Position numbers and translations under genes: made by a program. Below the pieces are notes generated by a model. That model had not been told where the DNA came from. It worked only from the letters and a program-made list of their open reading frames with translations, and made no database searches. Shown here in pieces: positions 11,289 through 40,600 of a DNA stretch of 64,000 nt. Source of the DNA: Lepidodermella squamata (Eukaryota > Animalia > Gastrotricha); assembly GCA_047495785.1 (NCBI GenBank), contig JBLDXI010000042.1:4092001-4156000 (forward strand). Reading direction: 5' to 3'. The first letter of the stretch is position 1. Each line of letters starts with the position of its first letter.

Positions 11289-11522
11289 GTAAATAAAAAC
11301 CGGTGTAAAGTATCAAGAGAAGTTCAATCAATCCTCTATATTGTTTTTAAAAATCTGTTAAAAATGCGTTGAGAGATGCGCATGAAATCGATTGTGCACC
11401 AGTAGATAAACAATTTCCGCAGGGCTGATCAGCTATGAGCTGTATTTACTTTGGTTACAAGGTAATACTGGCTTTTTTAGAGTTGGTACTTTGACTTGAA
11501 AATTTTGAGCGACTTTTGCGAT

Positions 11523-16009: not shown

Positions 16010-16645
16010 CTTTGTCCGCTCTGTTTAAACACCCTATATATGAATATGTGTACAATATCAGAAGGTTAGCAGCAGTAGCACGGGAAATTTTCAGCTGATT
16101 TTTTTCTATTATTCTGTTCACCGGCGTAGCGCGAGATCGGACGCACGGTTGCATTCGTTACGATGCGAGGTTTTTTCGTCGGAATACAGCTCGAAAACAA
16201 GCAGCGACGGCACCTGATGGAATGCGCGGTGCAACAGCAAGCGGTGGAAAGTGTTTTTTGAATAAAATTAACCCAACCATGCTTGGCTTTCAATTCGTCA
16301 TGCGGCGAAGTCCATCTGAACCCTTGCCCTCGCTAAACGAAACCAGGTTTACACAGGAATTGAATTTAAAAGTGGAAGAATGAATCAGCAAATAAACTGT
16401 TTTGATGATAAAAAAGAAATCGGAAAGTTCAATCGATCACATATTTTTATTTCGTATAATATCTCTCTTAGCAATCGATCATATGGCAGTTTCTGTTGTA
16501 ACACAGGATATTTTGGACAGACTACAATTTCAGAAGGAGCTGACATAAAGGTCAAACGGCGCATTACATTTTGTTTCACAGAAAATACACAGGATAGAGT
16601 TTTTGAACGATTTATTCCTTTCAATTTTTCAGAACCGGCTATTTT

Positions 16646-18832
16646 TTAGCTTTGCTGCTCGTAGCTGCAAACAACACACTGGCTCAGCTTGTCCATGACA
16701 GAGCTCGGGGTCAACAGTGCCGTCTTGTTGCTGTGGGCTTTCGCGGCGAGCCAGTAGCTAAAAAGTCCAAACATAATTAAGATGAAATGTAAAGAGTAAC
16801 AAGCTTACCTAGCGCGGTTTCCGAACAGATGGCAGTTGCCGTCAGCGTTGCATTCAATGTAGGGGTGGCTGCGGAACTCTGGCAAGCATGAACCAGGGGA
16901 TTCGAGCTGTTGGCCACTGCCCATAGCACCGTCAGTGTGCATAATGTGGCTGATGCCGTGCCACAGATAGCGCCAAGACCTCGGGCAGTTCGGCCTCTGG
17001 TTATTCTGCGAGTGGAACGCAATAACCGGGCCCTTGGCAACGCAAACGTGGCACAAGCTGATATACTTGATGACACCCTCTTTGCACAGCATGTCCTTGA
17101 ACTTTTCGGTGATGGGCGCTGCTAGCCAGTAAGACTCAGCGTGGCGAAGGGATTGCAAGCAAACTCCGTCACCGTTGCAAGTCATGAAGGGCATAGGATC
17201 GAAATGCTTAACGCAAGATCCGGCTTTTCCGAGGTCTTGAACGTGAGCCCTACCCTCGTCGGCAGTGTGCATAAGGGAGTACCCGGTATACAACAGATCA
17301 TGACCAGCTGGGCAAGGGCGCCCGTCGGAAGTTGCAGTACTTTCGTGGCGTTGCAGATGTCTGGCGTAAATGGTAAGAACATCACTGTTCCTCGCGGCAC
17401 CCGGGGCTCCTTTGTCGCCACGTTCGCAGGCACCCTGCTTGAATAAACCCGATTCACCCTGGTCACCCAACTCGCCATTATTGCCTTTCTCGCCCTTTTC
17501 ACCCGTGTTTCCCTTATCACCAAGATCACCAGCAGGCCCCTGGCGACCTTCGATTCCCTTATCACCCTTGACACCCTTCTCTCCAGGAGGGCCAGGGGTA
17601 TACAGCGTGTCGTCATCGGCAGAATCGCCCTCTAGGCCAGGGAAACCCTTCTCGCCTCGGTTACCTTTCAGGCCACGAGCACCAGGGCGACCAGTTTGCC
17701 CCTTGTCGCCTTGGTCACCCGGATCACCGCGATCGCCTCGCTCGCCGTCCTCGCCAACAGTTACCCCACCGTTCTCACCCGGGGCGCCTGCCTGACCTGC
17801 ATCACCCTTGAATCCCTTCTCCCCCTTGTCACCTTGTATTCCCTCATTTCCTGGATAACCTGGTCGCGAAACACCAGGCTGACCTTTAACACCGGCCTCG
17901 CCCTTGTCACCCTGCGCGAAATCAAATTCTTAATTGAAAATATGAGCAATAACTTAAAATCAAACCTCTTCACCGAAATAGAGAGCTGTTCCATTGCGAC
18001 CTGATCTGCCTTGCTCGCCCTGTAATATATTTCAGCCATTATGTCGTCATTTTCCACTTCCACTTTCGACTTACCTTGACGCCAGGCAAACCGCGGCTTC
18101 CTGTCACAGGTTGACCCTTCGGGCCGCGAAGTCCTTTGTCGCCCCTATCACCCCGAGCTCCTTCGGAACCAGCAGGGCCTCTTAGACCAGGAGTACCGTA
18201 GTCACCCTAATTTGGTATAACGAAGAGATAATGCGGAGATACGTCAAATTTTTCAAAGTTTACCGTGATTCCCTTGCAGCCACGATCACCTGATGCTCCA
18301 GGTTTGCCCTTTTCACCCCTTTGACCTTGCGGACCGGGAGCGCCATCCAAACCGTCGATGCCAGCGCACCCTGGATGTCCCTTAGCTCCGTCACTGCCCG
18401 GCTCTCCTGGATAACCAGGCTGGCCCTTATCACCTCTTGTACCCTGAACAGAATTTTTTCAAGGAATATAGCGGTAGAATTATAAGGCCTTACAGGTGAT
18501 CCAGGAGCTCCGTAGTCACCCCTATCACCTTTCAGACCAGTGCGGCCAGGGGATCCAGGTACACCTGGCTCGCCATAACCAGCGTTGCCCTTATCACCAG
18601 ATTCGCCTCGTCGACCAGGTTCTCCAGGGTCACCAGCGACGCCATCGGCAGCATCACGGCCTTGAAAACCCTTCACGCCCCGCTGGCCACGGTCACCCTT
18701 CTCGCCCCGATCACCCGTCACACCACATTCGCCGGGCGCTCCGCCACAGTCGCAATCCTGAGCTTGTGCGAATGAACCGGCAAAGAGCGCCAGCGCCAGG
18801 ATGCCGGCCTTAAGCAACCGACAAGACACCAT
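16646..18832 (-). CDS. Short collagen IV-like chain B
   Basis: Signal peptide [27 protein letters not shown] motif, Gly-X-Y repeats, and NC1 ([21 protein letters not shown]; [23 protein letters not shown]; LSQCVVC). Confidence 0.88.
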
Positions 18833-19489
18833 ATCTAAATCAGTCCGATAAAAAAAACAGCAACGGTGAGATTCGTAACCTAGCGATAATAGCGTTAGGG
18901 CTGGTGGAAAAAATAGGAGAAAAAATTAATTAGCTTGTAACGCTGGATAACACGGGATTCGGTATGGACGAGCTCGCCTACAGTTTCAGTGAGAGCTGGG
19001 TATGTGCTCATCAAAACAACGCTACGCGCCGGCGAAAAAATTGACTCGCCCGGTATAACATCGTAATTAAATGCACGAGAAACTTGCAATGTTAAAACGA
19101 GCGTTTTTTTCTCATCACCCTACAATTAGGTCCGGACTAAAGGCCACCAGGATTTAAAAGCGATGAATCATTATTTTCATCTGATGAACATGATTGCCCG
19201 TAACTTGTTAAAGCCAATGATCGATATACTTGTATGACCAAAAAATCTCAAAGATTTTAACTTTTCGAGTTTTCGTTTTATTATCGACATTTTCGGGTTA
19301 TTGATTTTTTATCATTTGTGATGGCAGTATTATCATTATTCACGTCTAACATTCACGGGTCATCATCAGATGAGCTATATTTCGAATAAAAGCACAGGAC
19401 GGGTGTTGCAATATCGGAGACAAAATATAATCAGTACACAGGTTTCAACAACAACTTGAATTCACTCGACATAGATTTAAAGGCAGTTT

Positions 19490-22025
19490 TTAACGACGCT
19501 TCTCAAGCAGCGGGTTGCGGCGTTCGAAATCGTGCTCACCGTCGATAGGTTCGATCAGCTTGTCGTTCGAGCAGACAATGCAACGGCTAACGTGACCGAG
19601 CACGTCGGCGGCATTCTTGATCATACTCGTTGTCTGTTCCGGACCAGTAGCCATCAACCAGTAACTGAAAAGCAATATGAAAGTCAGAACGCGCAAAAAG
19701 GAGACATCAACCGATCACTTACCTCATCTTATCAGAGAAGAAGAAGCAAGTTTGGTCAGCGTTGCATTCCAGGAAGGGATGGGCGTGGAACTTGGGCAGG
19801 CACGAACCTGGCGATTCCAGGCGTTGGCCACCAGCAGCTCGTCCAACGGAGTGCTGAAAAGAGAACAAGTTAAGCATTTTCTGAAGTTCAGTGACAAAAA
19901 TACCATGACGTAGCTGTAGCCAGACCACAAAGGAGTCCAGTTCTTAGGGCACTCAGGTGAGCGGTTCTTTTGGCTGTGGAACGCAAGCACAGGGCCTCGA
20001 GCCATGCAAACTGAGCAACGGCTGATGAAAGGCTTGATTGCATCTCCCCTAAGCAGCTGTTCCGGCCGCTTGTCAGCATCTTCGAACGACGCCGAAAGCC
20101 AATACGATTGAGCGGGCTGGTGGCCAGCTGAGGTAAGCTCTTCGTCCGTATCAAAGGCCTTGAGGAAGGGAGTCGGCGTGAAGCTGCGAATGCATGAGCC
20201 GGCTGCGCCAAGATCCTGAACGTTGCTGCGGCCACCGTCTTCAGTATGAAGAAGGGAGTAGCCGTTCCACAAGAATTTGTGGTAGCTCAAGCAGCCGCGA
20301 TGCTGCGACAGCTCCTTCGGAATCATTGAGTCTTGGAAGTGACGAGCGTAGATTTGGCCACCCTGAATGAAGGGCGAGTCGCCCTTTTCACCCTTAGGAC
20401 CATCATCGCAATCGGCGCCTCCCTTGGTGCCTTTCGGGCCCTGAAGACCTGCGTCACCTCGGGTACCACGCTCTCCCCTTTCGCCATCATCTCCGACGTC
20501 ACCGCGCGGTCCGGTGACGCCCCTGTCACCCGGCAAACCATCGTCGCCCTGTTCACCCTTCGGGCCATAGTTGATCCGGCTACGACCGCGTTTGCCCTTT
20601 TCACCATTTTCACCATCATCACCCTTTTCGCCAAGCTCGCCCTTGGAACCCGCATCACCCTTGTCACCCTCGGCACCTCTGTAACCGGTTTGGCCGGCAA
20701 TACCGGGTTCGCCCTTGCGTGAAATTCCAGGGCGACCAGCTGTTCCCTTGGGGCCTTGCTCGCCAATATCGCCAGCTGCACCAGGGTTGCCAACTGGGCC
20801 TTTATGACCCTTCGGACCAGGAATGGCTACGCCGTTGTCACCCTTAGCACCCTTATCACCTCGGACACCCTTGGGGCCGCGGAAGGCTTCGGCGCCATTG
20901 AAACCTTTCTCTCCCTTATCACCCCTCTCACCCTTGTCTCCCTTATCGCCAGAGATACTGTCACCACGCTCGCCCTTATCTCCTTGGTCACCCGGTACTC
21001 CACGGAGACCAGGTGCTCCTGGATATCCTTTTTCGCCCTTCTGGCCATCAGTGCCCTGAAATACATGCATATTATGTTGGTTTCAAGTGCAGCAGATATA
21101 AATACTCACTCGGTCTCCATGGTCACCGCGGCGGCCGGGGAATCCCGGGTCACCAACAGCACCATCGATGCCAGGCTCGCCTCTTCTACCATTCTGACCA
21201 TCACGACCGCGAACACCCTTTTCACCTTTAGCGCCTCGCTGACCGTCAGCACCAGGTAAGCCGCGGAGGCCTTGGTCTCCATCAGGGCCCTGGGGTCCTT
21301 CGCTTCCGGGTTCACCGTTTTCACCATGCTCACCGGAGGGGCCCTGAAATTAAACCTTAGCAAAATGAAATTCGCGATAAAATTCTTACCGGAAGACCAG
21401 GCAAACCATCAGGACCACGCAGCGTGTCGCCTTTCTCGCCCTTCTCTCCACGCTGACCCTGGTCACCATCGGGACCTGGTCTACCAACGGAGCCATCGCT
21501 GTAAAATGTCTTAGTTCAGTAAGTGATGCGCTTAATTTTTTCGTTACAAACCTGCCATCGCGACCAGCATAACCGCGTTCTCCATCGTCTCCAGTCGGGC
21601 CCTTTTCACCTGGAGCACCCTTGGCACCTGGTACACCCTTGCATTGACAGTTACGACGGGCGTCGATCATGTTGCACTCTGCGCTATTTGCCGACGAAGA
21701 AACTTCTTCTCCCTGAAAAGGACGCGGTGTTGAGGGAATTCTGCTGAGAATATAGGAAAGTTACCGGCAGAACGAAGGCGACAGACGAATCTCCAGCGCG
21801 GGGTCGAGCCTGAATGCGGCGAACGCGATTGGTCGTGACGCGACGACGAGGAGGTTTCGGGGCGGCTTGGGCGTCAGCAGTGCTGGCTGGAGCAGCGCCG
21901 CCTTGAAGTGCCTGGTCTTCCTGAGGTCCGCTTCCGAAAACCGTGATATCATAGCCGAACATTTTGAAAGCTTCGACGGCGCTTGCCGCCAACAGGACGG
22001 GCAGCAACAACTTGACCAATAACAT
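19490..22025 (-). CDS. Short collagen IV-like chain C
   Basis: Signal peptide MLLVKLLLPVLLAASAVEA, NCQCKGVPG motif, Gly-X-Y repeats, and NC1 (QDLGAAGSCIRSF; [23 protein letters not shown]; VSRCIVC). Confidence 0.88.
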
Positions 22026-24173: not shown

Positions 24174-24728
24174 ATGCTTACAGCCGAATCCTTTGCCGCT
24201 GAATGCATCAATTTTCTGACAATTTCGTGCGATTACGGCATGGATTGGGAACAAGTGAACAGTGGCACTTCTAATGTATTTACTGCTGACGCTGTTCTAC
24301 GAAATGAGGTCTTCCTGAGAAGAAAGGAGAAAGTGGCTTCAGTCTCAGATCATAGAGATTTGCTCAATGTCGAACATCACGTCTGTTTTAGCACTTCTTA
24401 CAACTGCCCAGTTATTTATATGAATGTATCGCGATGTAATGGATCTCGTTTGACTATCGAGGAGATTATTAGTGAGCTTTCACCCTCTATGGTGTGCGTT
24501 GAAATGTTACCACCATCTTCGTTCAGCCAAGCTGAACATCCTGCCATCGGTTCTCCCTTTTACTTCTTACACCCTTGCACAACTTCAGAGCTTATGCAAA
24601 AGTTAACCGATAGGCCCAAAAATGTCAACCAAATTGCTGCTTGGCTATCGGTTGTGCAAAGATATGTGTTCTTGAAGCTTTCTCTTCTCGATTACTTCAA
24701 ATCTTTAGAATCCAAAGCTGATGTTTAA
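24174..24728 (+). CDS. ATG10: Ubiquitin-like-conjugating enzyme ATG10
   Basis: EHHVCFSTSYNCPVIY and SQAEHPAIGSPFYFLHPCTT motifs, including the catalytic HPC cysteine. A probable 5'-UTR intron lies at ~23979-24151. Confidence 0.9.
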   Translation: MLTAESFAAECINFLTISCDYGMDWEQVNSGTSNVFTADAVLRNEVFLRRKEKVASVSDHRDLLNVEHHVCFSTSYNCPVIYMNVSRCNGSRLTIEEIISELSPSMVCVEMLPPSSFSQAEHPAIGSPFYFLHPCTTSELMQKLTDRPKNVNQIAAWLSVVQRYVFLKLSLLDYFKSLESKADV

Positions 24729-24760
24729 TTTTTCGGTTATTTACGGTTTAGCTTGTTAAA

Positions 24761-27700
24761 ATGGATGAGCAAGCTGCATTTAATCACACTGTTAGCACTC
24801 TAATTGACGCTTGGAATGACCCTCAAACGAGACTTAATTTTCCTAGTGCAACAAGTGCTTTGCTGGATTGGTTTCTGAGCTATGCACGTTCGCCAATTCT
24901 GGCCATTGTTGACCTTGTCGAGCATTTGATGTTCGCCCATCTATCTCGGCCGCTGAATGAACCAGAGCTGCTCTGCAAAGCTGTACTATACTTGTTTCGT
25001 CAGTGGCTCTCAAGCCGACCCGAAGTCCTTAACGGCTCTTTGAAACTTGAGCCCGAGCTTCAGGTTCGGACCATGCGCGTATTTGGCAGGTAACTTTATT
25101 TGAGGCGTAACATTTTTGGTAATACAATTTACGTAATAGATTGATTCCCGAGTTAATTCCTGAAATGAGAGCTCTCTTTCCGAGCCAGATCGCGACACCA
25201 GAAATGAATGAGGTGGTTGCCGAAACCATAAAAAATCATTTGCCGATTAACAACGAGGCAGCCCTGTCTATTATTATGGGATGCCCCTGTGCTATAACGA
25301 AAATTGATCCTGAAAACATTCAACAGATCGTAATCTTTGCAATGAGCACCGGAAGATTTCAAATAGGAGATCAAATTTTGATGGAATGCCCGCAGGCTCT
25401 TGCATACCCGATTCTCAAAGCTCTGGACTCGTTGCTAGCTTGTCCTACTCCAGACACATTTATTGCTGAGATTTCTAAAATCTGCCAGACTAGCTTTTCA
25501 AGGGTTGATTTAACACACGCGACTGTGGAGCAAGTTATCACAAAAGCCATCAAAAAGCGACAATTATCGAGCACTTCTTGTCCAAAGTTTTTATCCGAAG
25601 TGAAAGCGCGTCTCTTCAAATACTTTCTTCGCAAAACGTTGACATCAGGCAGGCCTGAAATGGATGTTCAAAGCTTTGTTGATGCCATCAAAGATCTGGC
25701 AAGTGGAGATGAGGCGTTTCAGGAGCAAGTCGTCGTCTCGTTAAGAGCTTTAGGCCATTCTGATTTAGCAACGGCATTTTCTACGTATTTTCGCGAGAAA
25801 AACGATTTAGCAAATCATAAAAAACGTCGCAATGGCCAACAAAAAGCAAGTGTCGTTTTACCAGAACGTTTCGCTAACGCAAAACCGCCCAAACCACGGG
25901 GTGATAGTATGTATTCACCGAGTTTGGTTCAGGACGACATTTTACTAGTCGACTCTCCTCACATTTTCGGCTCGTCAATCGACGTGATTCGCCATGTTGA
26001 TCTTATCAGTGTTCGAATGTTTTGGCGCCGGCGTTTTAAACTGATTCATGCTCAAAACACACGCCGCGTGACGTTGATGGTCATCGCAATCCCGCATTCT
26101 GTTTTCATATTTGATCTTGAAAAATTGCTCAAATCGAACGATCGTGTGATTAAAACTGGCTTTGCCGAGCTGGAGAATTTGATGAAATCTGATAAAGTCA
26201 TTAAGCTAGTCTATCTGCCGTGTTCTGATGAACGCGCCATGGTGATGGGGAAAGTTTTCTCCGAATCCTTCAAATACATCACCTCTCGCATAGGAATTCG
26301 TGCGTTATCAAGGAATATCGACCCGTCGCGTCCGCTTTCAGTCCGTTTGTCTTCCGCCGTTCGTACTTGGTTGAATCAATCGTTGCCAACATTTTATCGC
26401 ATGTCAAATTGGACGCAGAGACCGTTGCTACCTGGTCAGCTGAAATTCATGGCTCTCGAGGCTCATGCGCTTTTGGACGTATTTTTCGCAATGAGCGAGT
26501 TTTGCACCAGGAATAATGTAAGTGATGGAAAAAGTTTGTTCACCATTGGGAATAATTGTTCATATTTTCAATTTTAGATGGATTTTGAGGCTGTCAAGAA
26601 TTTAGCTTTAAAAACCGGCTGGGACACCCAATATAGCGAAACTGAATCGGACGATGACGGTGATGATGAGGATGATGCTGTTAATTACGGAGATAATGAC
26701 GATTATCACCAAAACTTTATGGCAAAAGCTTCTTCCTCGAATCAGCAGCCCGAAAAGCAGCAAAAACCCAAGGGCGAGGCCCCGCCCGGTTCAATAACCG
26801 GTCGTTATTTCAACAACAAACCAACAGCAGTAGCCTTGGAGCCTTTCCAAGTCCAATCTGGTCGAAATTCGGGCGAACCATCGGAGAAAAAGCAGAGACG
26901 GTCGAGGTTTGAAGACATATCCCAGCAAGATTTGGCTAACAAAGGCTTATCACTAGCTGCTCCGGCAAAATCTATCAATTATATGGCTCGCAGGTCTGAA
27001 TCGGTCGAATTGCTGAGAAAATCTGTATTATTCATCGTTTCCTACGAATTTACAAATATCGCCCTCGAACTGTGCCGGCTTGAATTCATTGTTCATCTCT
27101 GCTCACCCGATCGATCTACGCCGGAACAAATGCTGGGAATCGGGGCGAATCGAGCCTACAAAAAGGTTGTTATAGGCGGGCAGGAGTTGATTGAAAACAT
27201 GAAAAAACTCAGCCAAAGCTGCTTGATTTCTCAGTTTATTCCGCTGGCAGTTGAAGAAAATCTCAATTTATGGCCGCGGAAAAGTGTTGAGCCAATTTTG
27301 AAAACGACTGGTTTGTCTAGCGATGAAATCGCCTGCCACTATGAGATACGCCGTTTCCCGTTGGAAGGAGCTCCTTTGATCGTTTACCACCCTCGCGATT
27401 GCTTTGCGGCTAAATTACTACGGGGCATGAGGATTGAGACAAAGTTCAATTTTTGTCCAGCGCCGGATTTTCACGGTAAGGCAAGTGACGCTCAACTTGC
27501 GATTTTAGCCGGGGCTGGTTTGGTGAATAATGGCAATCGAGTTTTACTCCTCGCAACGAAAAGTACTGAACAAGTTTTCTCTCGCAGTGACCTTCGAATC
27601 ATTCAAATTCCGAGATTCGAACGGTTTTACTCGCCTGGGGGTTCGAAGAAAAAGGCGCTTGAGACAAAACGTGGCTTAACGCAACAAACAGCCTGGGTTG

Positions 27701-29319
27701 TCTCTGAATTACGCGCAATTTTACCAGCTTGTGTCTTACCCCCTGAGAAAAAGAAATATTTCTCGGCTAAACAGTACGAAGTAACAAAAGTAAACGGTAC
27801 CTCGGAGCCGGTTAAGAAACCTGAACCTGAGCCTGAAAAAGATGCCCTACCCGTGATTCCTGAGCCGGTTGTTGTTACGCAAGAAGAGCCACCCATTGAG
27901 CAGTTAGCGAAATTGGAGCCAGTAAAGCCGTGCGAAAATCCGACCAGTCTGGCTGATGTGAAATTCTTGTTTTTCACAACGAATAAACAACTTTTCACCC
28001 TAGCGTCGTATCTCGCCGCTGTTGGTTTTTCCGCGGTCGTAATGGCAAAATCCGGCAATTTCTCGCTCGATGCCCTGGTTCGGGCGAGAAAAGAGAAGCG
28101 AGTTTTGGTTGTTGATGAGCAGTTCACCCTTGACCAAATCGCATCTTTAGGCGCTCAACCGGGCGAGGCGATTTTACTATCAGCCCCCGACGGTCGTTTG
28201 CTGACGCAAATGCGAGCCCTGGCGGATAAATTCAAGGTGAAGAATCAGTTCATCTCGATTTTTAAGGGGGCTGGTTTCGATGCGAAACAATCAGAACCGC
28301 CTGTTCGCTTGCTGTTTTTCGGCGATACGCTCAAGTGTATTCGCGACTTCTTAGCGAAAATTCCCGCATTTTTCGACGTAATTTCAACTAATGAAGCAGC
28401 GGCTAATGCGCCAGTTAACCCGGTTGCGAGTTTAGGTGGTCCGATTGTTGTGAATCTCAAGGCAGCGGCGAATAATCGAATGGTAGCGACGGCGGGTGAT
28501 ACGATTGAAGCGGCTGTTCAAGTTGCGGCGAGGACCGAGCGAATTCTAGTGGCGGATCTCACTAACTACCCGTTTTTCTCGGCGAATCAAACGAATAACC
28601 CGCGCATTTTGTTGGCCCCAGATCGAACGCTGGACTTGGTTAGTTGGCTACATCTTGTGGTGCCGATTTTTAATTAATTTCCGGTTTTTTTATTTTTTTT
28701 TTGGGTAATTTTGACATTATCTTCACGCCACTTCAATCTAAATTTTTGAAATTTGTCTAAATTTCGAGAAAAATGCGTTGATGTAAATCGATGTAAAATA
28801 TGCCTAAAATCGGATTCAAAGGATTTTCTTTGAATTCGTGATTTCTTTTACTTTTCGGGTTTATGAAATCTGAAATCCTTATGGAAATCCCTTAATAATA
28901 TGCCAATATGCGGTTTCAACTAATTTCAGGCGAAAATGTTCTTTATTGAATTGTTTAAACTACCACAACAACTGCTACTGCCGCCCTTCCGGCCAACTCA
29001 AGTCGACAAGGTCAAATTCGTCATTCATTCGAAACAACTGGTTGATTTTGCGACGTACCTGAAGTTAGCCGGCCTTGAAGTTCGTCTCGATTCTTTGCAC
29101 AAAACTTTCGCAGACGCTTGCGCTGTTGCAAAACGTGAAAATCGCTTCCTGATTTCGATGAATACACGCGAAACTTCTAACTATTTGTGGTCGAATCCGA
29201 ACGTACTGCCCCAGAAAAGTGTTTTACTGCTGTCGGAAGAGCACGCGAAACCGATGCCGTTGATCGATTTGACAAAACGAGTCTACGATCAAGTCGCTGC
29301 TCGATTTGCTGCACCCTAA
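24761..29319 (+). CDS. EXD3/Mut-7/Nibbler-like protein A: helical N-terminus, degenerate DEDDy exonuclease, tandem Mut7-C-like repeats; exons ~24761-25089, ~25140-26517, 26578-~28638, ~28931-29319
   Basis: SNWTQRPLLPGQLKFMALEAHALLDVF matches the EXD3/WRN-type ExoIII region. Repeated F..LA.YL...G......A..E.R.L motifs follow. The 26518-26577 gtaagt...ttttag intron joins the two large ORFs. Confidence 0.75.
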
Positions 29320-29473
29320 TGATAATGACTCTATTTTTCTGTGCGACGTCATATATATGCACATTTTTTAATTTTTCTCGTTTCAAAAAAAATGAAGACG
29401 ATTTTTGTCTTTATTTTAAATAAATAAAAAAGCGCGTTACTATTTTTTCCAGCGATATTGATTGATATTTTGA

Positions 29474-32400
29474 ATGGATGAAGACTCAGCGGCTCGCTAT
29501 ACGAGTAAAACACTGCTAGAGGCGTGGGGCAAGGAGAAATTGCGGCCTAATTTCAAAGCCTCGACCAGTTCGTTGTTAGACTGGCTGTTTGATTATGCGC
29601 CAAATCCTTTCGAAGCGTTATTTGAACTGATCGAGCAAATTCAAATCGATTGCATCGATAAACCAAGCGATATAATTCAAATAATTCTGGAGTATTTCAC
29701 GACTTGGCTGAAACAGCATAGTGTGGATGGATTGATTGATCAAAAAGCGAAGGAACATTTATCTCGTTCTGAACTTCAAGTTCGAGCCATAAAATTGTTC
29801 GGCAGGTAAGCAAATTTATGGGTTTCCTAATTATTTTTAAATTGTTTTTTCCACCCTCTAGGTACTGGCCTGACCTTTTGCCCCTTCTCACATTCTGCCG
29901 AGTCGATTCTAGCAATAAAAACAAACTATTCGACGCGGTTTATTCGGTTTTTTCAATTTTATTAAATGCGAAAAAGCACGATGAAGCGATGGATGTGTTT
30001 CGCAAATTAACCGAAGATTTGCGAGGTTTAATCTCAGATCGGCACATCATTCACCTGGCACGGTATTTAACGTGTTCCGGGCTGCGAAAGGAGTCGGAGC
30101 AAATGTTTCGGCAGTGCAATGAAACGCATCGAGCTTCGATTATGAAGTACTTTGACTCGATGCTGCTATTTACTGATCGCGAATTCGAACGCGAATTTCC
30201 GTGCTGTACCAACGTGATGTGCGCGATTAAAAAAATGGAATTCGAGGAATTTATCGAACATTTACTCACATCGCTATCTTTACCAGTTTCGCTGTGCCCT
30301 TCAGTTCAAATGCGGGCTAAAATTAAATTGTTTCGTTTCATCACTGAAAAGGCGATAAATTCTCGCGATCCGACGATGGATTTGCTGAGTTTTTGCGAAA
30401 TCACAGCTGAAATGGGCGAAGGTGATAAGAATTTTCAAGAACACGTTATCCGTGTTTTGAAAACTCTAGGCCAGTTTGATTTGGCGCATTATTTCAACCG
30501 AAATTGCTTCACACATTCAAGGGATGATGACAGTGAAGATGGGAGATCGTCTTCGAAGCGATCTAAGACTACCAATGGAACGTCTAGCCGACCTCCGCCC
30601 CCACCACCTCCGCCTATAATTTCGGCTCTGAGCTACAAAAAGTCGTCGAGTCGTTCGAAAACAAGCCGATCGACATTCAGGCTTCCGATCGAGGAAAACA
30701 AAGTCGCATTTGTCAACAATGTCGATCAATTCAAGTCAGGTAAATTTTATTTCAAATATTTTACGAAAAATAAGAAAATTGCTGAATTTTTTTATTTCCT
30801 TTTACATTAAAAAAAATATATTTTTGATCGTATTTTGCTTACAGTTATGGATAAGTTGGCTACTTGTCCCCTGATGGCATTTCGTCTATTTTGGCGGCGG
30901 CAGATTCCCGCTTTTCTTGATAAGAGAAAACGCGGAATCGCTCTATCAATTTTGGCCATCGCTATTCCAAGCAATGTTTATCTCATTGATCTAACCCGGC
31001 TACCTCAATTGCTAGAAGCTGAAAAGCGCGGAAATATCCTGTTTTGGCTGCGCGATATACTCGAGGCTGAAAAAACTATTCGCCTAGTTTTCCGACCGAA
31101 TGAGGATATCAAAACGTTGCAGCGTGAATTCGGTGGTTCTAGTAAAAATTTCACCATGAGTTCTCTGCGTGATTTGGCCGGCTTTGTCGATCCAAAGCGA
31201 AGACGGCGAAATTCCCTATCATCGCTGACTAGGCGATGGCTAAATTACAATTTACCGGTGGAATTTCGATTCACAAATTGGCTTCGAAGGCCCTTGTCTC
31301 GGGATCAAATCAAATTTGCGGCTACTGAGACGTACGCTTTGTTGGAAGTCTATCAAAAAATGGCGAAATACTGCTCAAATAATGGGGTTTGTATAAATCT
31401 TCGTAAAAATCGAATTTTCGAAAATCGAAATTTTTAAGGTGGATTTTGCTAGTCTTCGCCGGCTAACTTTGAAAGCTAGTGATGAAGACGGCTTAAGCGA
31501 TGCTTTGATTGATGAAGATGACGGCGAAAGTTCTGATTCGGATTCGGAAAACAACTACGATCTATTTCCACAAGACCGAAATTCTCATGCGAGAAATGGC
31601 CATGAAAAATGCGACGATCGGCCTGTCATTTCGTCTTCCATGTCAGCTAATCCTTATATGAGTTTGACCAGTAGTGTCCCGGTTTCTGCTGCTACTACGA
31701 AATTTACGGTTACTTGCAATTCTCTTCCTTTAACTTCTGCCTCTTCTGTTAATCATTCCTCGAATCTCATGTGCCTTGATTCTGGGCCGCAATTCTTGTC
31801 TGATGAATTTGAACCTCTGCAACCGATTTTCAACGAAATTTCTTATAAAGACGAGTTGCATTCGTTGAAAAAGTCTATCTCTAACCCTCTTGCCTTGAAC
31901 AAATCTTCCGTTGAACACAACTCGTCTTCCTCCCCGCCTCGCGCCAAAGTTTCGCCGAAGAAATGGAGAATGGAAGATGTTTTCTTCATTGTAAGCTACG
32001 AATTCTGCGAACTTGCGCTGGAGCTAGTTCGAATCGGTTTCACGACTCAGTTACTATCTCGTAAAGACAGCTGCGACTTCGAATCTGTTTCGAGAGCCTC
32101 TGTCGCGAAAGGATCCGTCCGACGGGTGGTACTGGGCAAAAGCGATCTGATTGAATCGATAAAATCGAAAAGAGGCAGTGACTTCGAAGGCGTCTTGGTT
32201 CTGGCTCAATCTTTTGAAGATACCGGCACTGCAGTTACGCAAATTCTTCAAAAACTTGATTTTGACTCGATTGCGATTCAGGCAAAACTTGCCAGGGCGC
32301 CGAGATATCCAAGCCCGGGTGATCTGCCGCTGGTGGTTTTTCACCCCCGGGAATTTTTCCCTCGAGCTCTGCGAGAAAGAATTCGGCCCAAAATTTACAT

Positions 32401-33949
32401 TTGCCCCACTCCGTTGGGTGAAAATATTTCAGATGAACAGGTAAAACTTCAGGAAATTAGCTGTAATTGAATGTTAAAATTTATGTTGATAGCTTGCATC
32501 GCTGGCTGGTTTGAATAATTATCGAACGAATCGCGTTTTGATGACTGACAGCGAGTTTGGCGAGCGATTGAAGCAAAAATATGGCTCAACCCTTCGAATT
32601 TTGATTGTCCCGAAAATGTATTTATCGCCGCGAGATTTGGACAAATTAGCCGCTGTTATCGTCGATCAAGTGAAGGAATTTTCGAGAGAAAATCGCCGGC
32701 CAGTATCAGCCTCATCCTCTAATTCGAGCAATGAGCAAAACAAAAAATTGAGCCCGAAACCGGTGATTGAACCTCAGCAGAAAATTGAACCGATTATTGT
32801 TACGAAATCTCCCTTGATTAAATTTTCGCTTCTCTGCGCTATGGATCAAACCATCAGTCAATTCGGCGAATATTTGGAAATTCTCGGCTTCTCCTGCTCA
32901 CGCGTTCCGACTGGGTCGATAACTTTCCAACGAGCGCTAGATATGAGTCGAGTTGGCAAGAAACTACTTATTGCCTCTGAAAGTTTTGCCGGAGATTCTT
33001 CGAATGATGAAAGTTTTGTTTGCGTGAGAAATGGCGATAGTTTTCTCTCGGCCATCAACGCGATTGGCAGCCATTTCAACTGCATAGAACTCGTCGATGC
33101 TCGGCTGAGTTCCTTGAAAGCCAAACTTGAAACGATGCCTTACAAAGTTTTGGTCTATGGAAGCAATTATCGCGGCGTTTATGATTTTCTGGCCCAAGTT
33201 ACATCGTTCATTTCGCCGATTTTCTACGATTCTGCTCAATCTTCGTTTGAGAAAGTGGTGGAAGTTGCGGCTCAAGAGAATCGAATATTGCTCGCAGATG
33301 CGAAGTTGATCGCGACGAAATCTCTGTCTCAAATTTCCTACATATCGCTGGTACCCGACTCAGTCATTGAGGAGGTGAGTCGAATATTGTTTTCACAGAA
33401 ATTTAAGAAAAAATGAAAAATTATCGAAAATCCTTAATTGAAAAATATTTTAATTGATTTAAAGTTGAAAAATGTTGAGTTCTGAATTGAAAAATTGTTT
33501 GAAACTAATGGTTTTTTCTTGTATTTTTTCAGGCAAAATTCATTTTCCATCTCCTCGGTATCGATCAGTTCGCTTTGATTCCGGAAAATTTACGGCAAAT
33601 GGTTCGAGAAACGCGATTTATCATTCACGCTAGCGAGGCCTTGAAACTCGGCTGTTTTCTGGAAATGGCCGGTGCTGCTTCGGTAAACACCGATTTAACC
33701 TCACTGCCCTTCGATGAAGTGTGCGCCGTGGCGAAAAATGAAGAAAACTGCGTAATTCTTGCCAAGAAAACCGAAACTAACCGCTTGTTCCTGTCAACGT
33801 GCCTGGCTAATAGCTGTCACCTAGTCTCACCCGATCAAGTCATTCTGCTTCCATTACCGAGTCTTACTAGTGAATTGCTGAAAGTTATTTTCGATAAACT
33901 CAACGAGTTGCTGGTCAAACTACCGCCGGTCAAGCTGGAATGTGTTTGA
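29474..33949 (+). CDS. EXD3/Mut-7/Nibbler-like protein B, tandem paralogue of A
   Basis: Colinear similarity to A (LLDWLFDYAPNPF, ELQVRAIKLFGR, FRLFWRR, TNWLRRPLSRDQIKFAATETYALLEVY, FIVSYEFCELALEL), with shared intron positions. Confidence 0.75.
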
Positions 33950-34182
33950 GTTTTATGAACTATTTTTTTCCTTTCGAATTTGAGCGTTGTAGCTATCCAT
34001 GACAGATATTTTTGCCGTTTCTTTTTCTGTTTTAATATCTGTCGATAAATTTGTTTGAATAAAATTGAGCGAAAATATCGCGATATAATAGGCTAAAATC
34101 CCTCCTTAATAACTCATCTCTCCACCTTTCAACCCAATATTTTGAAATTTATTTATTACTTGATGTATTAAATAGATTTTTA

Positions 34183-37100
34183 ATGGGTTGGTCCAATAAT
34201 CGATATATTCTATTGGCAGCAGGCGATTTTGTCCTAACCGCAATCTTCTATTATTTCTATCGGAAGAAACGGCATTTATGGCACGCCGTAAAATCAGCCA
34301 TTTTCATATCAAATTCTACCGATCGCGAAGAATTGGCGAAGTTGTTGTATTGTGACCCGAAAAATGCTTCGCCAGCCCCGATATACGTTGCTGTGGAGGG
34401 TATCATCGAACCGACCCCGCCGACTAGAAAAGGCGAACAGGCCCAGGTTCTGGGTAGCCAATACCGACCCGAATCCACCCTAAGAGGCGTCTATCGGTTA
34501 CTTACAGTCGAAGAGCGGCATTTGAAACGATCGGCTGGTAACTGGTACGAGACAACAAATACGATCAGTGAAGATGTCAGCCACGTCCCGGCTTGCCTGG
34601 TCGTCAATTTAGCCGGTCCTCACCATACTGATTCGCTTCAGTCACCCACGGGTTTCAACGTCCAATCTGTCCTATCGCCTTATTCTTGGATATCAGGGGC
34701 GAAAATCGTGTATAAAGGCACAGAAAATATTGTCAAAGGCAGTTATAATCTCATAACAGGGTCAAGTAATGAACAAAGACAACCTAGTGATATTGAAATT
34801 TCTGCGTCTTCCCTACCGTCTAACAAACTTCAATTCTCGCTACCACCTCTCAACCTGGCCGACCAATCGATTTTGCAGGGAAATTGTTTGACCCAGGTGC
34901 ATTCAGAGCTAGAAGATAAGAATCGAAGTGTGATTGAATCGATTGGACAAATCGTTTTTGGTAACGTAGTTTTGGGTACTATTCGTCGCGAAAGCTTGCT
35001 GCTATGCGGCTCTCCTGTCTACGTTTTCGCGAACCTCGAACCCGCCAAATTGACTGGTGCCGGGAAAAACCCGGTTTCAACCGGTTTTTACCGGTTATCA
35101 ATTTTCTCTCGTGGCGGCGATTCCGTGCCATTCATCGTGACTTGTTCATCGCCAAAACAATTGGCCAGCGATTTGAAAACACCGGTCGTCGTCCTCGGCG
35201 TGTTGTCGTTCATCGGGTTTGCTGGGTTGGTCGCTCTTGCGGCGAAATGGTGGTGGGATCAGCGGGAAAGTCGCATGGTCAGCCAACGAGCTAGGCAACT
35301 TCGAGACGATGCGTTGGATCGGCGGCGCAATAAACTGACAGAGGCTGGGCAGGACACGGATACTTCGTCTTTTGATGGTACGTTCAGATTCGATTTGTTT
35401 CCTTGGTAACATGATTGCCTAATCTATAAAAAATGGTATCTATGAAAAACGATGGATATGCAATGGTAGAAGGCAAATATCCATTACTGTAGCGTTGAAC
35501 TTTTTTGAAAAACTGTTCGATTTCTTCCGCAAGACTTACTGATTGAAGTTTCCCTCAGCAAAATATAAGTGCAGTGAATTATGAAATGAAAATGATTTTA
35601 TTGTATCACTTCCCCGCGACTGAGCGTCTATACCCTTTCGGGTTTTGAGGAAGGCGAAGGCAAGGCAAACCAAAAGAATCAGTCACCCGCTGCCGGGAAG
35701 AATTGACAGTAGCGTACCCAAAGGCCGAAGCCGATCTTGAGTCAACCATCAAAACTGAACCTGTTGAGCCAGTTAACCGAATTTCCGGCGCAGGGTGCCG
35801 CAAAGCTGGTCGCTGACCCATCGGAAGCGAACCCGCCCCAAACAGTTCGCTGAGGAAGAAGCGCAGCGGAGATCGACTATCCGGGACGGATAATCCCGAC
35901 AGTGCCGAATCAATTCGCCGAAGTATCCACCAAGCTCAAGCGCTCCGTGAAAGCATTTGAATGCCAAGTTACCGAGCCGTTCGAATTCAGGGAAAACTGC
36001 CTCAAGTCGCATCCGGGCACCCTCGTCGACAACCTAGGATCACAAGGTGCCGCTCAAGGTTAATCAAGCGCTGCAGAAATTGCGGCTTCGTGTTAATGAA
36101 AGCCGGTGAACCGAATTCCATTAAGGGGCGAATGATCGTCCTGCAAAACAACATACCTAAACGCGGATTTAACTTTACCGCGAAACAGCGAGTAAATACG
36201 AGGCAAAGCGCGACCAGTAACATGCGTAATGTGAGATGCCCACACCAAGTGCTTTGAAAGCCACACGCCTAAGTACTTGAACTCTTGTGCCCGCGGAAGC
36301 GGAAGCCCACCAATCAACAGATTGCCAGCGTGAGTATCGGCCTTAGCACCAAATGCAATCCATTCACATTTTCGCGGATTCAAATCTAATCGCCATCGCT
36401 GCTACCAACGCTCAGTAACACGCAATGCTGCCTGTAAACGCACAGTAACTACTCCGGTTGCCCAAACGGCCTGATCGTCCGCATAGGCTGCCATCGCAGT
36501 TCGTACAAGCGCATCGTCATGCCTTACTTCAGAAGGAAAAGAAGTCGCAGTAAAGATTACAAATATAATAGGAGACAGAGGGCTACCTTGAGGAACACCA
36601 CACAGACAATGAAAAGGATCACTAACATCGTCATCGACCTTAACTCGACACCGACGGCCGCGTAGAAAATCAGACACCCAGGGAAGGCTGATACACTTGA
36701 GCGCTATACGCAAGCCGTTGTGCCAGACGCTATCATACGCGGCGCGGTTGTCAAGAAAACCTCACACGATCGATCAATCGAATCCCAAAATTCTCTATCG
36801 CCAGAATGCGGAGAGTTCACACTTCGGCACAACCGGCAATCAACTGCCCCGTTCGAGTTTGAATGGACGACCGCTCATTATTTCCTAGCATAGAATTCTG
36901 ACTAGACGGAAGTGACTTGGGTCGTGATACAATTCAAAATTAAATCTTCGTAAATTCCATCTAGTTATTTCAAAAATAATCTTCATAAAAAAATAGCCCT
37001 TCGATTTCCGATTTCTAGCAATCGAATAAATTTTGTCGACCAGGCGTAAATTAGGAAATATAATCTCGATTGCTTCAAGAGATAGAATCCCCGATGATTA

Positions 37101-37325
37101 AGCTCTATGAAATTATTTTGAAATTTTTTGAAATTATTGTTTTCTGCTTTTTGATCAGTTGATTCAATGTGCGTCGTGTGCTTGGATGCTCGACGTGACA
37201 TCTGCCTGCTGCCCTGCGGTCACGTCTGCATTTGTTCCACCTGTTACGGCCGCCTTCCTCTCCCCGCCCAGTGCCCGTTATGCCGCGGCCTGATCAACGA
37301 CACGGCGCCTTTGTTCTTCTCCTAG
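34183..37325 (+). CDS. MUL1: Mitochondrial E3 ubiquitin ligase MUL1/MAPL-like; exons 34183-35377 and 37159-37325
   Basis: N-terminal TM, GIDE-like region (YVAVEG...), second TM. The spliced last exon encodes the RING CVVCLDARRDICLLPCGHVCICSTC...CPLCR, and the phase-1 GT-AG intron is consistent. Confidence 0.85.
35580..36760 (-). mobile_element. Degenerate 5'-truncated non-LTR retrotransposon (LINE) in the MUL1 intron
   Basis: RT motifs GVPQGSPLSP, AYADD and FKYLGV lie in broken ORFs. The 3' end has AATAAA and a short (tttca)-type tail near 35580-35605. Confidence 0.85.
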
Positions 37326-37646
37326 ACGAAAACAAAATACTTATTACAACTAGCTGTCAATAGCAGCCTGCCAAAAAATGACTGCCGGCTATAAAAGAGA
37401 TACATTATTTTTCATGTGTTTTTTGCGTGTGACCGCTGATTATTTAAAAGCCGCTAAATTTGATCGCGAAATGACAATCGATTTTTTGCGTCTCGCTTGA
37501 GTGATTACGCCGCCTAAATATAAAAAACAGATGATGAAAAAAACGACTTGTTGTGCTATGTACATGATGCGATTTTTTATATCTGTAGAGAAATGAGGTC
37601 TTGTTCCAGATTTATTGAATGATATCATCCGGTTTGTAACAGAAAA

Positions 37647-40600
37647 ATGGCAAAAACTCCCAATTCAACAGCGAAGCAATATGCTTTCGGCGGCTTATCG
37701 TCGATGGTTGCCGAGTTTTCAGTATTCCCTATCGACACTTCGAAAACCCGGCTTCAAATTCAGGGCCAAACCGGGTGTAAAACCCTGGCCAGTCGGACAA
37801 AATACAACGGAATGTTTCATACTATGGTAACAATCGCGAAAGAAGAGGGTGTTTCAAAATTATACGGCGGCATATCGCCCGCGTTATTCCGGCAAGCGAC
37901 CTATGGCAGTATTCGAATTGGCATGTATTACCAGTTGAAGGCAATTTTCACATCGGCTGATCATGGCCGGGAGTCTTTTGTGAAAAATATCGCCGCAGGG
38001 TGTCTAGCCGGGTCTGCTGCGTCTGCAATCTGCAACCCGACTGATGTTTTGAAGGTTCGACTGCAAGCTCGGACTTCGAGTGCTTCGCTAGAAGCGCTGT
38101 CTTTGCCGCGGTGTTTCGCGCTAGTCTTTCGAGAGGAGGGCGTCAAAGGCATGTGGCGAGGGGTTCTGCCGAATGCTGGTCGAGCCGCCATAGTCGCTGG
38201 GGTGGAACTGCCGGTGTACGATTTGACGAAGAAGCTGCTATTATCTCCCCATATCGGCTTGTCAGATGGCAAAAGTGAGTTTATAAAAGTGAAATTTATA
38301 TAAAATGTATGATTATTATTTTCAACCTAAAATGACCACTTTTGACAAGTTAGCTTTGTCATACTTTCTTCCGTCCTAGGTTAAAGTTTGCTCGTAAAGT
38401 GTGTTTTGAGCCTCGTTGTAGGTACCTACAATCTCATATTATTTCTATAATACCGTCGATTTAAACAACAACTGCGCTTGATATTTTTGTTCTTTGCGCT
38501 CGGTTTTCAATATTAAGAAGAACCATGATACTGCTGAGATATCGCGGATTCTCTCACGCCAAAGTCTCACACAACCGTCAAGTGAACGCGTGAATTTGAA
38601 AGCAAATGCTGGCCTGGTTTGGCATTGAAAAATAATTTGTTATTTGAGCAGCTGAAAATTGTTTAGCGCTCTCCATCAGCCGGGAATTTCCCACCACACA
38701 GGACGAACTAGCGCCGATCATCCCACTCAATTAAGCATTCTCAGCCGTTCCGCGTAGAGTTGACATCAGCGCAGGGCACGACAGATAAAAGCTGAGACAA
38801 TATTGATAGTTCTTTAACCATCTACGGCCGAGCAGCTGCCGGTCCTGCTTGACGATAATTCCACCTTTTTATTTAATTCAGCATTCGCACGCTACAAAGT
38901 GTTGCCGTGAAATGCGTCGCTGGCGTGTAGCGATGATAACTTGAAAGTGTCAACCACCAATTCAATTACGAATAATGCTGATTATAATATTATAAGAATC
39001 GGAATTGTTTTCGCTTACCGGTAACAAACGTGCAAAATGTCAGAGCGTGTCATTTTCTAATGAATGATTTGTTGAATCGTGACTTCACCATTTCTCAAAG
39101 TGAAGAACAGACATTATTCATAAATTTGGTAATTTATTTGGAATTTTGGATTAATTTTTGAATTCTTTATATTTTTGAATTTCGATAATTCTTTAATTCT
39201 GTCTAAAATAATTGGAAATTAGGATAAAAAAGCTTCATAATCGTAGAAACCCTCCAGTCTCAGCATCAGTTTCGATATTCGAGGAAACTCATACCTGGCT
39301 ATATCAATTTGCAGTTTTTTAACTCGGTTTTGAATTTTGATGTTGAGTTCTCCGCGCACGATTCGGCCATCGCCACTTTGTTGGATGCTGAATCTCGTTC
39401 CAATTCTTATTTTGCAAATCACTGATATAGAAGAAATACTAGTGTAATAATATCATGCTTAGCTCAATTCCGGGCCCCCTTAGTTTCGCTTTTGCGAGCC
39501 CCGAGTCGCAATTTTCAACTTGGGGTTTATTGATGCGCATTGTACGCACCCAGGCTGGCCTATTCTCGGGCTATCCAACGGTACCTCACTCGCGGGGTCT
39601 TTACCGTTATCATCTTTTCATTGATTTTTGGTAGACCAAAATCACTCCATTTTGGCGCATCAAAATGACCCCACCGTGTAAGGTCAACCCAGTTGGCGGT
39701 ACTATGAAAAACGATTATTTATATGCAGTGGAAATCGTGTAGTTTATTGTTCTTACATCCTCAAAATTTGTGGTTTCAGTCTGGTATTTTAAGCGGATAT
39801 TCTGAACCCATCACCTTATTATTGAATATTATTGAATCGGGCAAATGCGAGCAAAATTAATTGCGGGTAGGCTTATCAGCTTCAGCTACGTAGCACGTGC
39901 ACAAGCCGTAGCCGGTGCCTTCCTCCAAGGAGTGGAATTCAACCATAGGCAAATTCTTGGCCTGGCAGACGACCTTGCAGAACCGCTCGCCGCCTGTTAC
40001 GTTCTCTTCATGGTACAATTCGGGGTTGTAGTTGTAGCAGGAGCACATCTCGAGGAATTCGTGGTATTTAGACCAATACTTGGGATAATTCAAAGAGTGC
40101 ATAATTTCCCCGCATTTCGGTTCGCATTCGTCGGCATTCGTGGCGTCGATGAGTTCCTGGAAACTGTTACTGGGAGTCACGATGGTGGCAGCGGCACAGG
40201 CAACGGCCATGGCGAAGCAAATCAGACGAGCAGCCATTGTGGGGATTTGAATGATAAGATCGAATTTTATGAAAGTGTAGTTTTCTGAGAAACTTCGGAA
40301 TTATTTATAACCATGCCATGAAAAAAACAAGTCGTGGGTGGTTAAAGAAGTATCAATATTGTCTCAGCCCTCTATCGTGCCCTGGGCTGGTGTTAACTCT
40401 ACACGAAACGGCTGATAACACTTCACTGGGTGGGTTGATCGGCGCATTTCGACTAGTGCGATTTTCTATGCTAGCACGGTAAAAACATGAGTTCAGCTGC
40501 TCGACTAGTAAATTCTTTTTTTTATCTTATGAGCCACGTGATGCTTTCCAGGTCAAAATTTTTTCAAATAAATGAACATTGCATGAAATTTGTGAGATCG

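Follow-up and report, generated by a model that had tools for sequence, protein, structure and literature searches.

Two adjacent genes, here called A and B, in a 64,000-nucleotide stretch of Lepidodermella squamata DNA (the window, to whose positions all coordinates refer; every feature described lies on the + strand) are read here as tandem duplicates of the MUT-7 family with a dead exonuclease and tail units derived from Mut7-C, whose products work as non-catalytic RNA- or protein-binding adaptors, a reading as a whole to which we give a probability of roughly 0.55. The enzymes of the MUT-7/EXD3/Nibbler group shape the 3' ends of small RNAs and carry a PF01612 exonuclease (EXO) domain that is usually followed by a Mut7-C domain (PF01927). 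A and B derive from these exoribonucleases, and each has kept a helical N-terminal region together with a DEDD-type exonuclease fold that is very basic; beyond an acidic, probably disordered linker lie five alpha/beta modules, each about 100-130 aa long, that are weakly but consistently alike. The modules would most likely come from the N-terminal (TOPRIM/receiver-like) half of one Mut7-C, with the zinc finger gone, and the proteins would act as non-catalytic, multivalent RNA- and/or protein-binding adaptors.

The tandem gene pair, its transcription and its conservation

The two genes are collinear, A then B, and fill positions 24761-33949 according to splice enumeration and translation. Gene A (24761..29319) encodes 1385 aa in four exons (24761-25089, 25140-26517, 26578-28638 and 28930-29319) and gene B (29474..33949) encodes 1350 aa in six (29474-29805, 29862-30739, 30845-31386, 31439-32440, 32493-33374 and 33533-33949), with GT..AG at the introns of both. 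The proteins are 25.6% identical over their full length (blastp, E 3e-99), and three intron positions are common to the two genes, introns 1 and 2 of A matching introns 1 and 3 of B in position and phase. An earlier first-pass annotation of this DNA had proposed a pair of tandem paralogues at this place, which the gene models and the blastp identity bear out, and all the peptides that it quoted are found in the predicted proteins.

Transcript support comes from RNA-like contigs of the public run X1, which skip one A intron (28639-28929, in one contig) and four of the five B introns exactly as predicted; at B intron 4, a loose contig end at 32440 continues with the opening bases of the following exon. 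Introns 1 and 2 of A lie outside read coverage and are based on their match to the B introns. The open reading frames, described earlier as intact, are accordingly spliced and transcribed, and splicing, which had been suggested as a test, came out as predicted where the contigs reach.

Between the genes lies a spacer (29419..29452), read directly from the sequence, in which two overlapping copies of AATAAA (29419-29428) are followed by TTTTTTCCAG up to 29452, 21 nt upstream of the ATG of B. Judged from these letters, the spacer looks like a putative operon or trans-splice arrangement; no support for trans-splicing was found among the reads. A repeat search returned no transposon-like flanks around the pair, and an Rfam scan gave no match in the window.

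Exonic differences from related strains comprise 25 synonymous and 7 non-synonymous changes (crude dN/dS ~0.08, binomial p 8e-11), and indels relative to a second run are confined to introns. Given this synonymous excess, A and B are under purifying selection, as had been inferred earlier from the intact frames of the two dead-site copies. The tandem duplication that gave A and B is old; since the same dead motifs and the three intron positions are common to paralogues that are only 26% identical, the loss of catalysis predates a long period of conservation. A new observation here is that a relative lacks the pair at the syntenic locus, where an Atg-like gene directly adjoins a MUL1-like gene on the corresponding contig. 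The product of a neighbouring mitochondrial-carrier gene shares only 50-55% identity with its counterparts in named animals from many phyla.

The missing locus, the lack of database homologues, the very fast divergence and the loss of catalytic residues could also be expected if A and B were decaying duplicates of functional MUT-7 genes, either young pseudogenes or copies under neutral drift, that have no function. This is scarcely credible, however, as two reading frames of about 1350-1385 codons have stayed intact across introns and are spliced correctly in RNA-like contigs, and as the shared motifs and intron positions, the 25:7 ratio and the restriction of indels to introns all argue against decay.

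Exonuclease domains of the MUT-7 family with replaced catalytic residues

The pseudo-exonuclease domain of A was located at 25996..26517 (aa 396-569) by phmmer to 7JW2, and that of B at 30847..31386 by PF01612 and 7JW2 alignment. In a Pfam scan, the domain of B matches PF01612 at E 1.1e-11 and that of A has no match at E<=1. Both have their best PDB match in Drosophila Nibbler (7JW2; E 1.4e-8 for B and 4e-6 for A), and a word-index search with exon 2 of A gave one weak match, to an oomycete PF01612 protein. On these sequence matches, the membership of A and B in the MUT-7/EXD3/Nibbler family of 3'-5' exoribonucleases is well supported and can be regarded as shown, in agreement with the first-pass assignment. 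The HMMER comparison with DNA_pol_A_exo1 and Mut7-C that had been recommended along with it succeeded in part, with PF01612 recovered in B only and Mut7-C below threshold in the third unit of A alone. For the N-terminal helical domain, residues 111-463 of A gave no Pfam or PDB sequence match that would tie it to the MUT-7/Nibbler NTD, and the linker that follows the EXO domain (26578..27009, aa 570-713), which is acidic, Ser-rich and probably disordered to judge from its composition and net charge of -8, matches no family in Pfam.

The catalytic motifs were compared with those of Nibbler 7JW2 and of an intact oomycete PF01612 protein (P0001). Exo I, DxEW in active enzymes, reads RMFW in A and RLFW in B, so that Asp is replaced by Arg and Glu by Phe in both paralogues. 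Similarly, Exo III (YxxxD) reads FMALE (FMALEA) in A and FAATE (FAATET) in B, with Tyr changed to Phe and Asp to Glu in both. The earlier description of an eroded active site is thereby confirmed against both reference proteins. As for the intact DEDD set that an alignment might have uncovered, sequence alignment keeps the Exo II Asp only (SDER in A, NEDI in B), the one DEDD carboxylate retained, and Exo I and Exo III are replaced. The retained Exo II Asp was absent from the first-pass annotation.

Two-metal hydrolysis by A and B almost certainly cannot run, since the Asp and Glu of Exo I and the Tyr and Asp of Exo III are replaced in both copies. It could be argued that the domains are still nucleases or other hydrolases that work through the Asp of Exo II, the Glu of Exo III or other residues, given that this Asp is kept in both proteins, that the change from Asp to Glu in Exo III is conservative and that, among the long regions, A and B are most alike in EXO (36% identity). 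Such residual activity is nevertheless very unlikely: Arg and Phe stand in place of the two Exo I carboxylates in A as well as in B, MUT-7 loses its activity when a single Exo-site Asp is changed to Ala (PMC11347159), and EXD1 (PMC4712191) and PML-PXL (PMC13659232), which have undergone similar losses, are inactive.

Five alpha/beta units in each C-terminal half

The C-terminal half of A and that of B each hold five alpha/beta units. The first unit of A (A-U1, 27010..27366, aa 714-832) starts with VLFIVSYEF, is modelled by AF2 with a strand-helix alternation repeated four times at pLDDT 52-70, and shares 33% identity with the collinear B-U1 (31970..32326). A-U2 (27367..27735, aa 833-955) starts with PLIVYHPRD and gave a poor AF2 model, and B-U2 (32327..32693) is split by the intron at 32441-32492. 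A-U3 (27949..28290, aa 1027-1140) is collinear with B-U3 (32811..33134) and, alone among the units, has a Mut7-C-like score. The fourth units run into a later exon, with the last helix of A-U4 (28291..28638, aa 1141-1256) in exon 4 at 28930-28977 and that of B-U4 (33135..33374) in exon 6 at 33533-33580, and the fifth units lie at 28978..29316 in A (A-U5, aa 1273-1385) and at 33581..33946 in B (B-U5).

Cross-unit HMM scores exceed those of all 400 shuffles for many unit pairs, always in register, although such shuffled controls are compatible with convergence of alpha/beta patterns. For example, with the U2 profile both A-U4 and B-U1 score higher than every shuffle and in register, and the same holds for A-U4 against U3 and U5, for the U1 profile on B-U2 (12.3 bits), for the U5 profile on B-U4 (9.4 bits) and for the U4 profile on B-U5, where the units are aligned; the U3 profile reaches 15.9 bits on A-U5, from strand 1 to strand 3. 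In hhalign comparisons, E values among U3, U4 and U5 are 0.002-0.03 (U3-U5 0.0017, U3-U4 0.0032), and U1 is not significant. The unit alignments and scans covered nine of the ten units, leaving out the intron-split B-U2.

The top Pfam match of A-U3 is Mut7-C (PF01927), at E 0.0039 and 17.7 bits against a gathering cut-off of 23.3, and it spans profile positions 3-86 of 146, which is the N-terminal half of the model. The other eight of the nine units scanned have no Mut7-C match at E<=10, and an NCBIfam scan of the units returned nothing relevant. The five Mut7-C repeats proposed in the first-pass annotation are thus partly borne out: they stand as five units with in-register similarity, and their naming as Mut7-C depends on one sub-threshold match in A-U3, on the weak likeness among the repeats and on a model of low confidence. 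Its observations on missing features were accurate. No paired CxxC of a Cys4 zinc ribbon is present in either C-terminal half, a CxxC scan finding none in A and a single Cx4C in B (CLANSC, aa 1302). Furthermore, the Asp that Mut7-C domains conserve behind their first strand (PMC5499597) is replaced in all ten units, where S, H, T, G or A occupies the position.

AF2 models of the tail are of low confidence (pLDDT 53.6 for A-U3 and 44.2) and show strand-helix alternation, with the same strand-helix order for U1 and U3 in a low-confidence model that was built without any repeat alignment. When the A-U3 model was compared with the atlas, a Mut7-C cluster appeared at TM 0.54 alongside CheY-like receivers. 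Foldseek and VIA searches with the same model gave generic Rossmann/receiver matches at noise level and did not list 8Q66, an atlas shape search with a 543-aa model stayed below TM 0.3, and an ESM-atlas feature search with U3-U4 gave scores below 0.8. The combined AlphaFold and Foldseek check that had been advised thus yielded the alternation, at a pLDDT of 44-54, and Foldseek matches at noise level. Taken as modelled, the units look like a generic flavodoxin/receiver-type fold.

Sequence searches at larger scale returned nothing further. A phmmer search with exon 3 of A (687 aa) against 1.84 billion representative proteins had 0 matches, and this absence of relatives of the tail is new here. 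With a U3-U5 profile, 5.8 billion proteins yielded no match at E<=10, and no locus could be confirmed when JGI metagenomes were scanned with the U1-U2 alignment. In the PDB, the unit profiles and A-U3 had matches at chance level only and did not recover the C-terminal domain (CTD) of MUT-7 (8Q66).

We infer that the tail units originate from Mut7-C. A different origin is possible, though it seems the less probable course: A and B would be dead MUT-7-family exonucleases all the same, and the tail would be a lineage-specific, generic flavodoxin/receiver-like array without Mut7-C ancestry, with modules that could be of de novo origin or taken over from some other family. The single sub-threshold Mut7-C match among nine units, best structural matches that are at noise level and go to receivers of the CheY type and to Rossmann-like folds, the loss of both the zinc ribbon and the conserved Asp, and the empty phmmer search would all suit such an array. 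Against it, Mut7-C tops the Pfam list of A-U3 with a match over the entire N-terminal half of the model, the atlas Mut7-C cluster is among the nearest shapes, and Mut7-C is just what one would expect to follow a MUT-7-type EXO (PMC11347159). The receiver matches do not speak against Mut7-C, since the N-terminal part of the MUT-7 CTD (CTD-N) has itself been described as receiver/TOPRIM-like (PMC11347159). In the Mut7-C reading, the units correspond at most to this CTD-N half, and the label "PIN-like" given to them earlier is among the weaker points; a clear PIN similarity of the Mut7-C domain was not found in the same study (PMC11347159).

Relation to known systems and possible roles

The likeness of A and B to the MUT-7/EXD3/Nibbler enzymes is one of layout, with a putative helical N-terminal region, an RNase D-type EXO domain after it, and then a tail of which one unit scores best on Mut7-C; the differences begin with the replaced catalytic residues of Exo I and Exo III. 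Whereas the tail of MUT-7 is one Mut7-C, made up of CTD-N, CTD-C and a Cys4 finger, that of A and B has five finger-less units and disordered linkers. In length, A and B exceed C. elegans MUT-7 (about 910 aa) by a factor of about 1.5. The numbering of MUT-7 constructs runs to about residue 900, the Mut7-C domain binds RNA, and an understanding of the role of this tail has only just begun (PMC11347159). Another parallel by description is C. elegans ZK1098.3 (P34603), a MUT-7 paralogue with an N-terminal domain (NTD), EXO and a partial CTD that is without the partner-binding insertion (PMC11347159). Its likeness to A and B, drawn from the description only, is that of a MUT-7 paralogue in which NTD and EXO are kept beside part of Mut7-C, and direct homology of ZK1098.3 to A and B was not detected in our sequence searches.

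Inactive relatives of the DEDD fold offer further precedents. EXD1 contributes an inactive DEDD domain to the PIWI-EXD1-TDRD12 complex and serves a small-RNA pathway as an ssRNA-binding adaptor that is conserved though inactive (PMC4712191), and it resembles A and B in having lost its catalytic residues while remaining conserved. It belongs to another branch of the family, however, and EXD1 chains were not among the PDB matches of the B EXO domain at E<=1; it is also small, carries an Lsm domain as well as a hook for dimerisation, and lacks the array of alpha/beta units. [quoted passage not shown] They are, like A and B, pseudo-exonucleases that retain at most one acidic residue, but they have an EXO-SAM architecture on a TREX-like branch, and no sequence relation to A and B was found here. 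The feature that unites EXD1 and Exu as a functional class, though not as a sequence family, is a conserved DEDD fold without metal ligands; it is found in A and B, which have their dead motifs in common and are under purifying selection.

From the family context and the precedents of EXD1 and Exu, A and B probably bind RNA or partners instead of cutting. If so, they would be a natural separation-of-function variant, in which catalysis has been discarded, the fold kept and part of the tail multiplied, and could show which non-cutting roles the EXO fold and the CTD-N module have. They would also add a case from the MUT-7 branch to the short list of pseudo-exonuclease adaptors, and, with the pair absent at the syntenic locus of the relative, they may reflect a rapid, lineage-specific remodelling of a small-RNA system. 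A more specific version, in which a lineage-restricted dead MUT-7 pair with a fivefold Mut7-C N-terminal half forms a multivalent RNA scaffold, perhaps as an A/B heteromer, that holds or protects small-RNA precursors or 3' ends, is tentative and on balance unlikely; were it true, a small-RNA pathway would here have evolved a new organiser, comparable to the MUT-8/Mutator-focus system that is specific to nematodes. The net charges of the EXO domains, +13 in A and +16 in B, are indirectly compatible with RNA binding by A and B without cleavage.

Gene models, transcription and selection

Gene models were built from the ORF listing together with enumeration of frame-preserving GT..AG introns, and these place two tandem paralogues on the forward strand. 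Gene A (exons 24761-25089, 25140-26517, 26578-28638 and 28930-29319; 1385 aa) and gene B (exons 29474-29805, 29862-30739, 30845-31386, 31439-32440, 32493-33374 and 33533-33949; 1350 aa) fill exactly the interval 24761-33949 delimited by the first-pass annotation, from the A start codon to the B stop codon. An old DNA-level tandem duplication is the origin that the sequences point to, because the two proteins align collinearly along their full length (25.6% identity, E 3e-99) and have three intron positions in common (after ...FGR, after the exonuclease domain, and before AK(M)F(F)I).

Two public sequencing runs, X1 and X2, were compared with window positions 28400-34000. X1 is RNA-like, with contigs that skip introns 28639-28929, 29806-29861, 30740-30844, 31387-31438 and 33375-33532 at the exact predicted GT..AG sites, and with a loose end at 32440 that continues for nine bases into the exon beginning at 32493. 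Read depth also drops within the A and B introns of this stretch; the first two introns of gene A lie outside it and are predicted. X2 looks like DNA from a close relative or strain, and has all of its indels in introns. Among the 40 differences listed (of 153 in total) 32 are exonic, 25 synonymous and 7 non-synonymous, and for this sample the crude dN/dS is about 0.08 (binomial p 8e-11, with a synonymous-site fraction of 0.23). One X1 contig has 18 loose T before position 29330, just past the A stop codon, which may mark an antisense poly(A) end or have arisen as an artefact of the library or the assembly; X1 also contains many 'opposite strands' joints.

An eroded exonuclease domain

Most of the first-pass annotation is borne out: it had described both proteins as MUT-7-type exonucleases with a lost active site, and there is good support for their being dead members of the MUT-7 family. 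The Drosophila Nibbler exonuclease domain (7JW2, 'Exonuclease mut-7 homolog') is the top PDB match for both B (1.4e-8) and A (4e-6), followed by EXOSC10/Rrp6 and WRN. Protein B matches the Pfam family DNA_pol_A_exo1 (PF01612) at E 1.1e-11, and A has no match to this family at E<=1. Motif substitutions were read from the PDB-search alignments and from a comparison with an oomycete PF01612 protein whose motifs are intact: Exo I has RMFW (A) or RLFW (B) where the intact enzyme has DTEW, Exo III has FMALEA (A) or FAATET (B) in place of YAALDA, and the Exo II Asp is kept (SDER in A, NEDI in B). Although A and B are only 26% identical, they have lost the same residues: Arg and Phe stand in for two metal ligands, Phe for the general-base Tyr, and Glu for one Asp. 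A single active-site Asp-to-Ala change abolishes MUT-7 activity (PMC11347159), and EXD1 (PMC4712191) and PML-PXL (PMC13659232), which show similar losses, bind RNA or DNA but are inactive. Retained nucleic-acid binding would fit the exonuclease domains of A and B, since these are very basic (net charge +13 in A, +16 in B) and among the best-conserved parts of the two proteins (36% identity).

Repeated C-terminal units

Following an acidic, Ser-rich stretch, five units (U1-U5) of about 100-130 aa were delimited in each protein. In their pattern a hydrophobic strand leads into a helix ending L..(G)F/L and the next strand into one ending A..e.R; an hLhh(D) strand comes after these and, further on, an iLL.PD strand. 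Two-sequence profiles compared with hhalign related U3 to U5 (E 0.0017), U3 to U4 (0.0032), U4 to U5 (0.022) and U2 to U4 (0.033), and gave nothing significant for U1. Single-unit HMMs beat all 400 composition-matched shuffles among U3, U4 and U5 mutually, between U1 and U2 in B, and between U2 and U4, and all cross-unit matches above the shuffles are in register. These weak but consistent signals indicate a repeated pattern and probable homology rather than proof of it, because the shuffles leave generic alpha/beta periodicity uncontrolled.

The proposal of five amplified Mut7-C domains (PF01927) survives in a weaker form, as five related alpha/beta modules; only unit 3 of A (A-U3) resembles Mut7-C, with a sub-threshold match confined to the N-terminal half of that domain (CTD-N). 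Mut7-C is the top Pfam match of A-U3 at E 0.0039 and 17.7 bits (cut-off 23.3), over profile positions 3-86 of 146, or at E 0.1 with the whole exon as query; none of the eight other units scanned singly matched it at E<=10. As the first-pass annotation had noted, no zinc ribbon is visible: neither tail has the CxxC pairs that a Cys4 ribbon needs (A has none, B a single Cx4C), and every unit lacks the Asp that Mut7-C carries after strand 1 (PMC5499597). Unit profiles found nothing in the PDB, 5.8 billion proteins or JGI metagenomes, and phmmer with the 687-aa exon found nothing in 1.84 billion representatives.

The suggested AlphaFold and Foldseek analysis recovered alpha/beta alternation in U1 and U3, but at low confidence. 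AlphaFold2 modelled A-U3, aligned with nine units, as strand-helix-strand-helix-strand-helix-(strand)-helix-helix (pLDDT 53.6); in the model of A residues 714-1256, aligned with B only (pLDDT 44.2), U1 and U3 each have four strand-helix pairs (pLDDT 52-70), and U2 and U4 are unmodelled. Foldseek with the A-U3 model returned CheY-like receivers from the PDB at E about 0.01 and nothing at E<=0.001, and an ESM-atlas shape search retrieved receivers together with a single cluster composed 100% of PF01927 (TM 0.54). Such matches are compatible with a CTD-N origin of the units, without establishing it, because the MUT-7 CTD-N is itself described (PMC11347159) as resembling receiver and TOPRIM domains and as lacking clear similarity to PIN. 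In the main rival reading the C-terminal tail would be an unrelated flavodoxin-like array; we consider this less likely. Our overall reading, dead MUT-7-family exonucleases acting as adaptors, is given a probability of roughly 0.55, with more confidence in the architecture and less in the function. Most likely the two proteins, built on a MUT-7 chassis, would act like EXD1/Exu as adaptors for RNA or partners, without catalysis.

Genomic setting

Every gene between 24.1 and 38.3 kb lies on the forward strand with short spacers, including an Atg3/Atg10-like gene (24174-24728; Autophagy_act_C E 1e-24), a MUL1/GIDE-RING-like gene (34183-37352) and a mitochondrial-carrier gene (37647-38303) 3.7 kb downstream of the pair. 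The Atg3/Atg10-like stop is 32 nt from the A ATG (spacer within 24726-24763), and an acceptor-like GGTTTAG ends 9 nt upstream of this ATG; the A-B spacer (29317-29476) holds two AATAAA and then TTTTTTCCAG, ending 21 nt upstream of the B ATG. With such very short same-strand spacers, the acceptor-like site, and AATAAA with TTTTTTCCAG upstream of B, the layout looks like an operon or trans-splicing arrangement.

A relative of the carrier gene, at 74% identity, lies on L001, a metagenome contig from ENA; named animals across many phyla reach only 50-55%. This contig is syntenic (1190-4443), with the order Atg3/10-like, MUL1/GIDE-RING-like, mitochondrial carrier conserved (L001 1349-1666 corresponds to window 24369-24707, and 1853-3320 to 34183-37352). 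On L001 a gap of 187 bp separates the first two genes, and the carrier gene comes next; the 9.2 kb with A and B has no counterpart there, and tblastn of A and B found no match on the parts of L001 examined. No transposon-like repeats flank the pair, which was either inserted in this lineage or lost in the L001 relative.

Elsewhere in the window, several large forward-strand ORFs at 4084-10942 with Ion_trans domains (up to E 1e-54) look like a multi-exon gene for a four-domain voltage-gated cation channel. An ORF at 11496-12704 has a Cys-loop receptor ligand-binding domain, and a 630-aa ORF at 57251-59143 consists almost entirely of ankyrin repeats (Ank_2 E 6e-166). Blocks of 54-59% G+C with strong negative GC skew, compared with 40-45% G+C elsewhere, occur at 14000-22000, where they overlap collagen-like genes.
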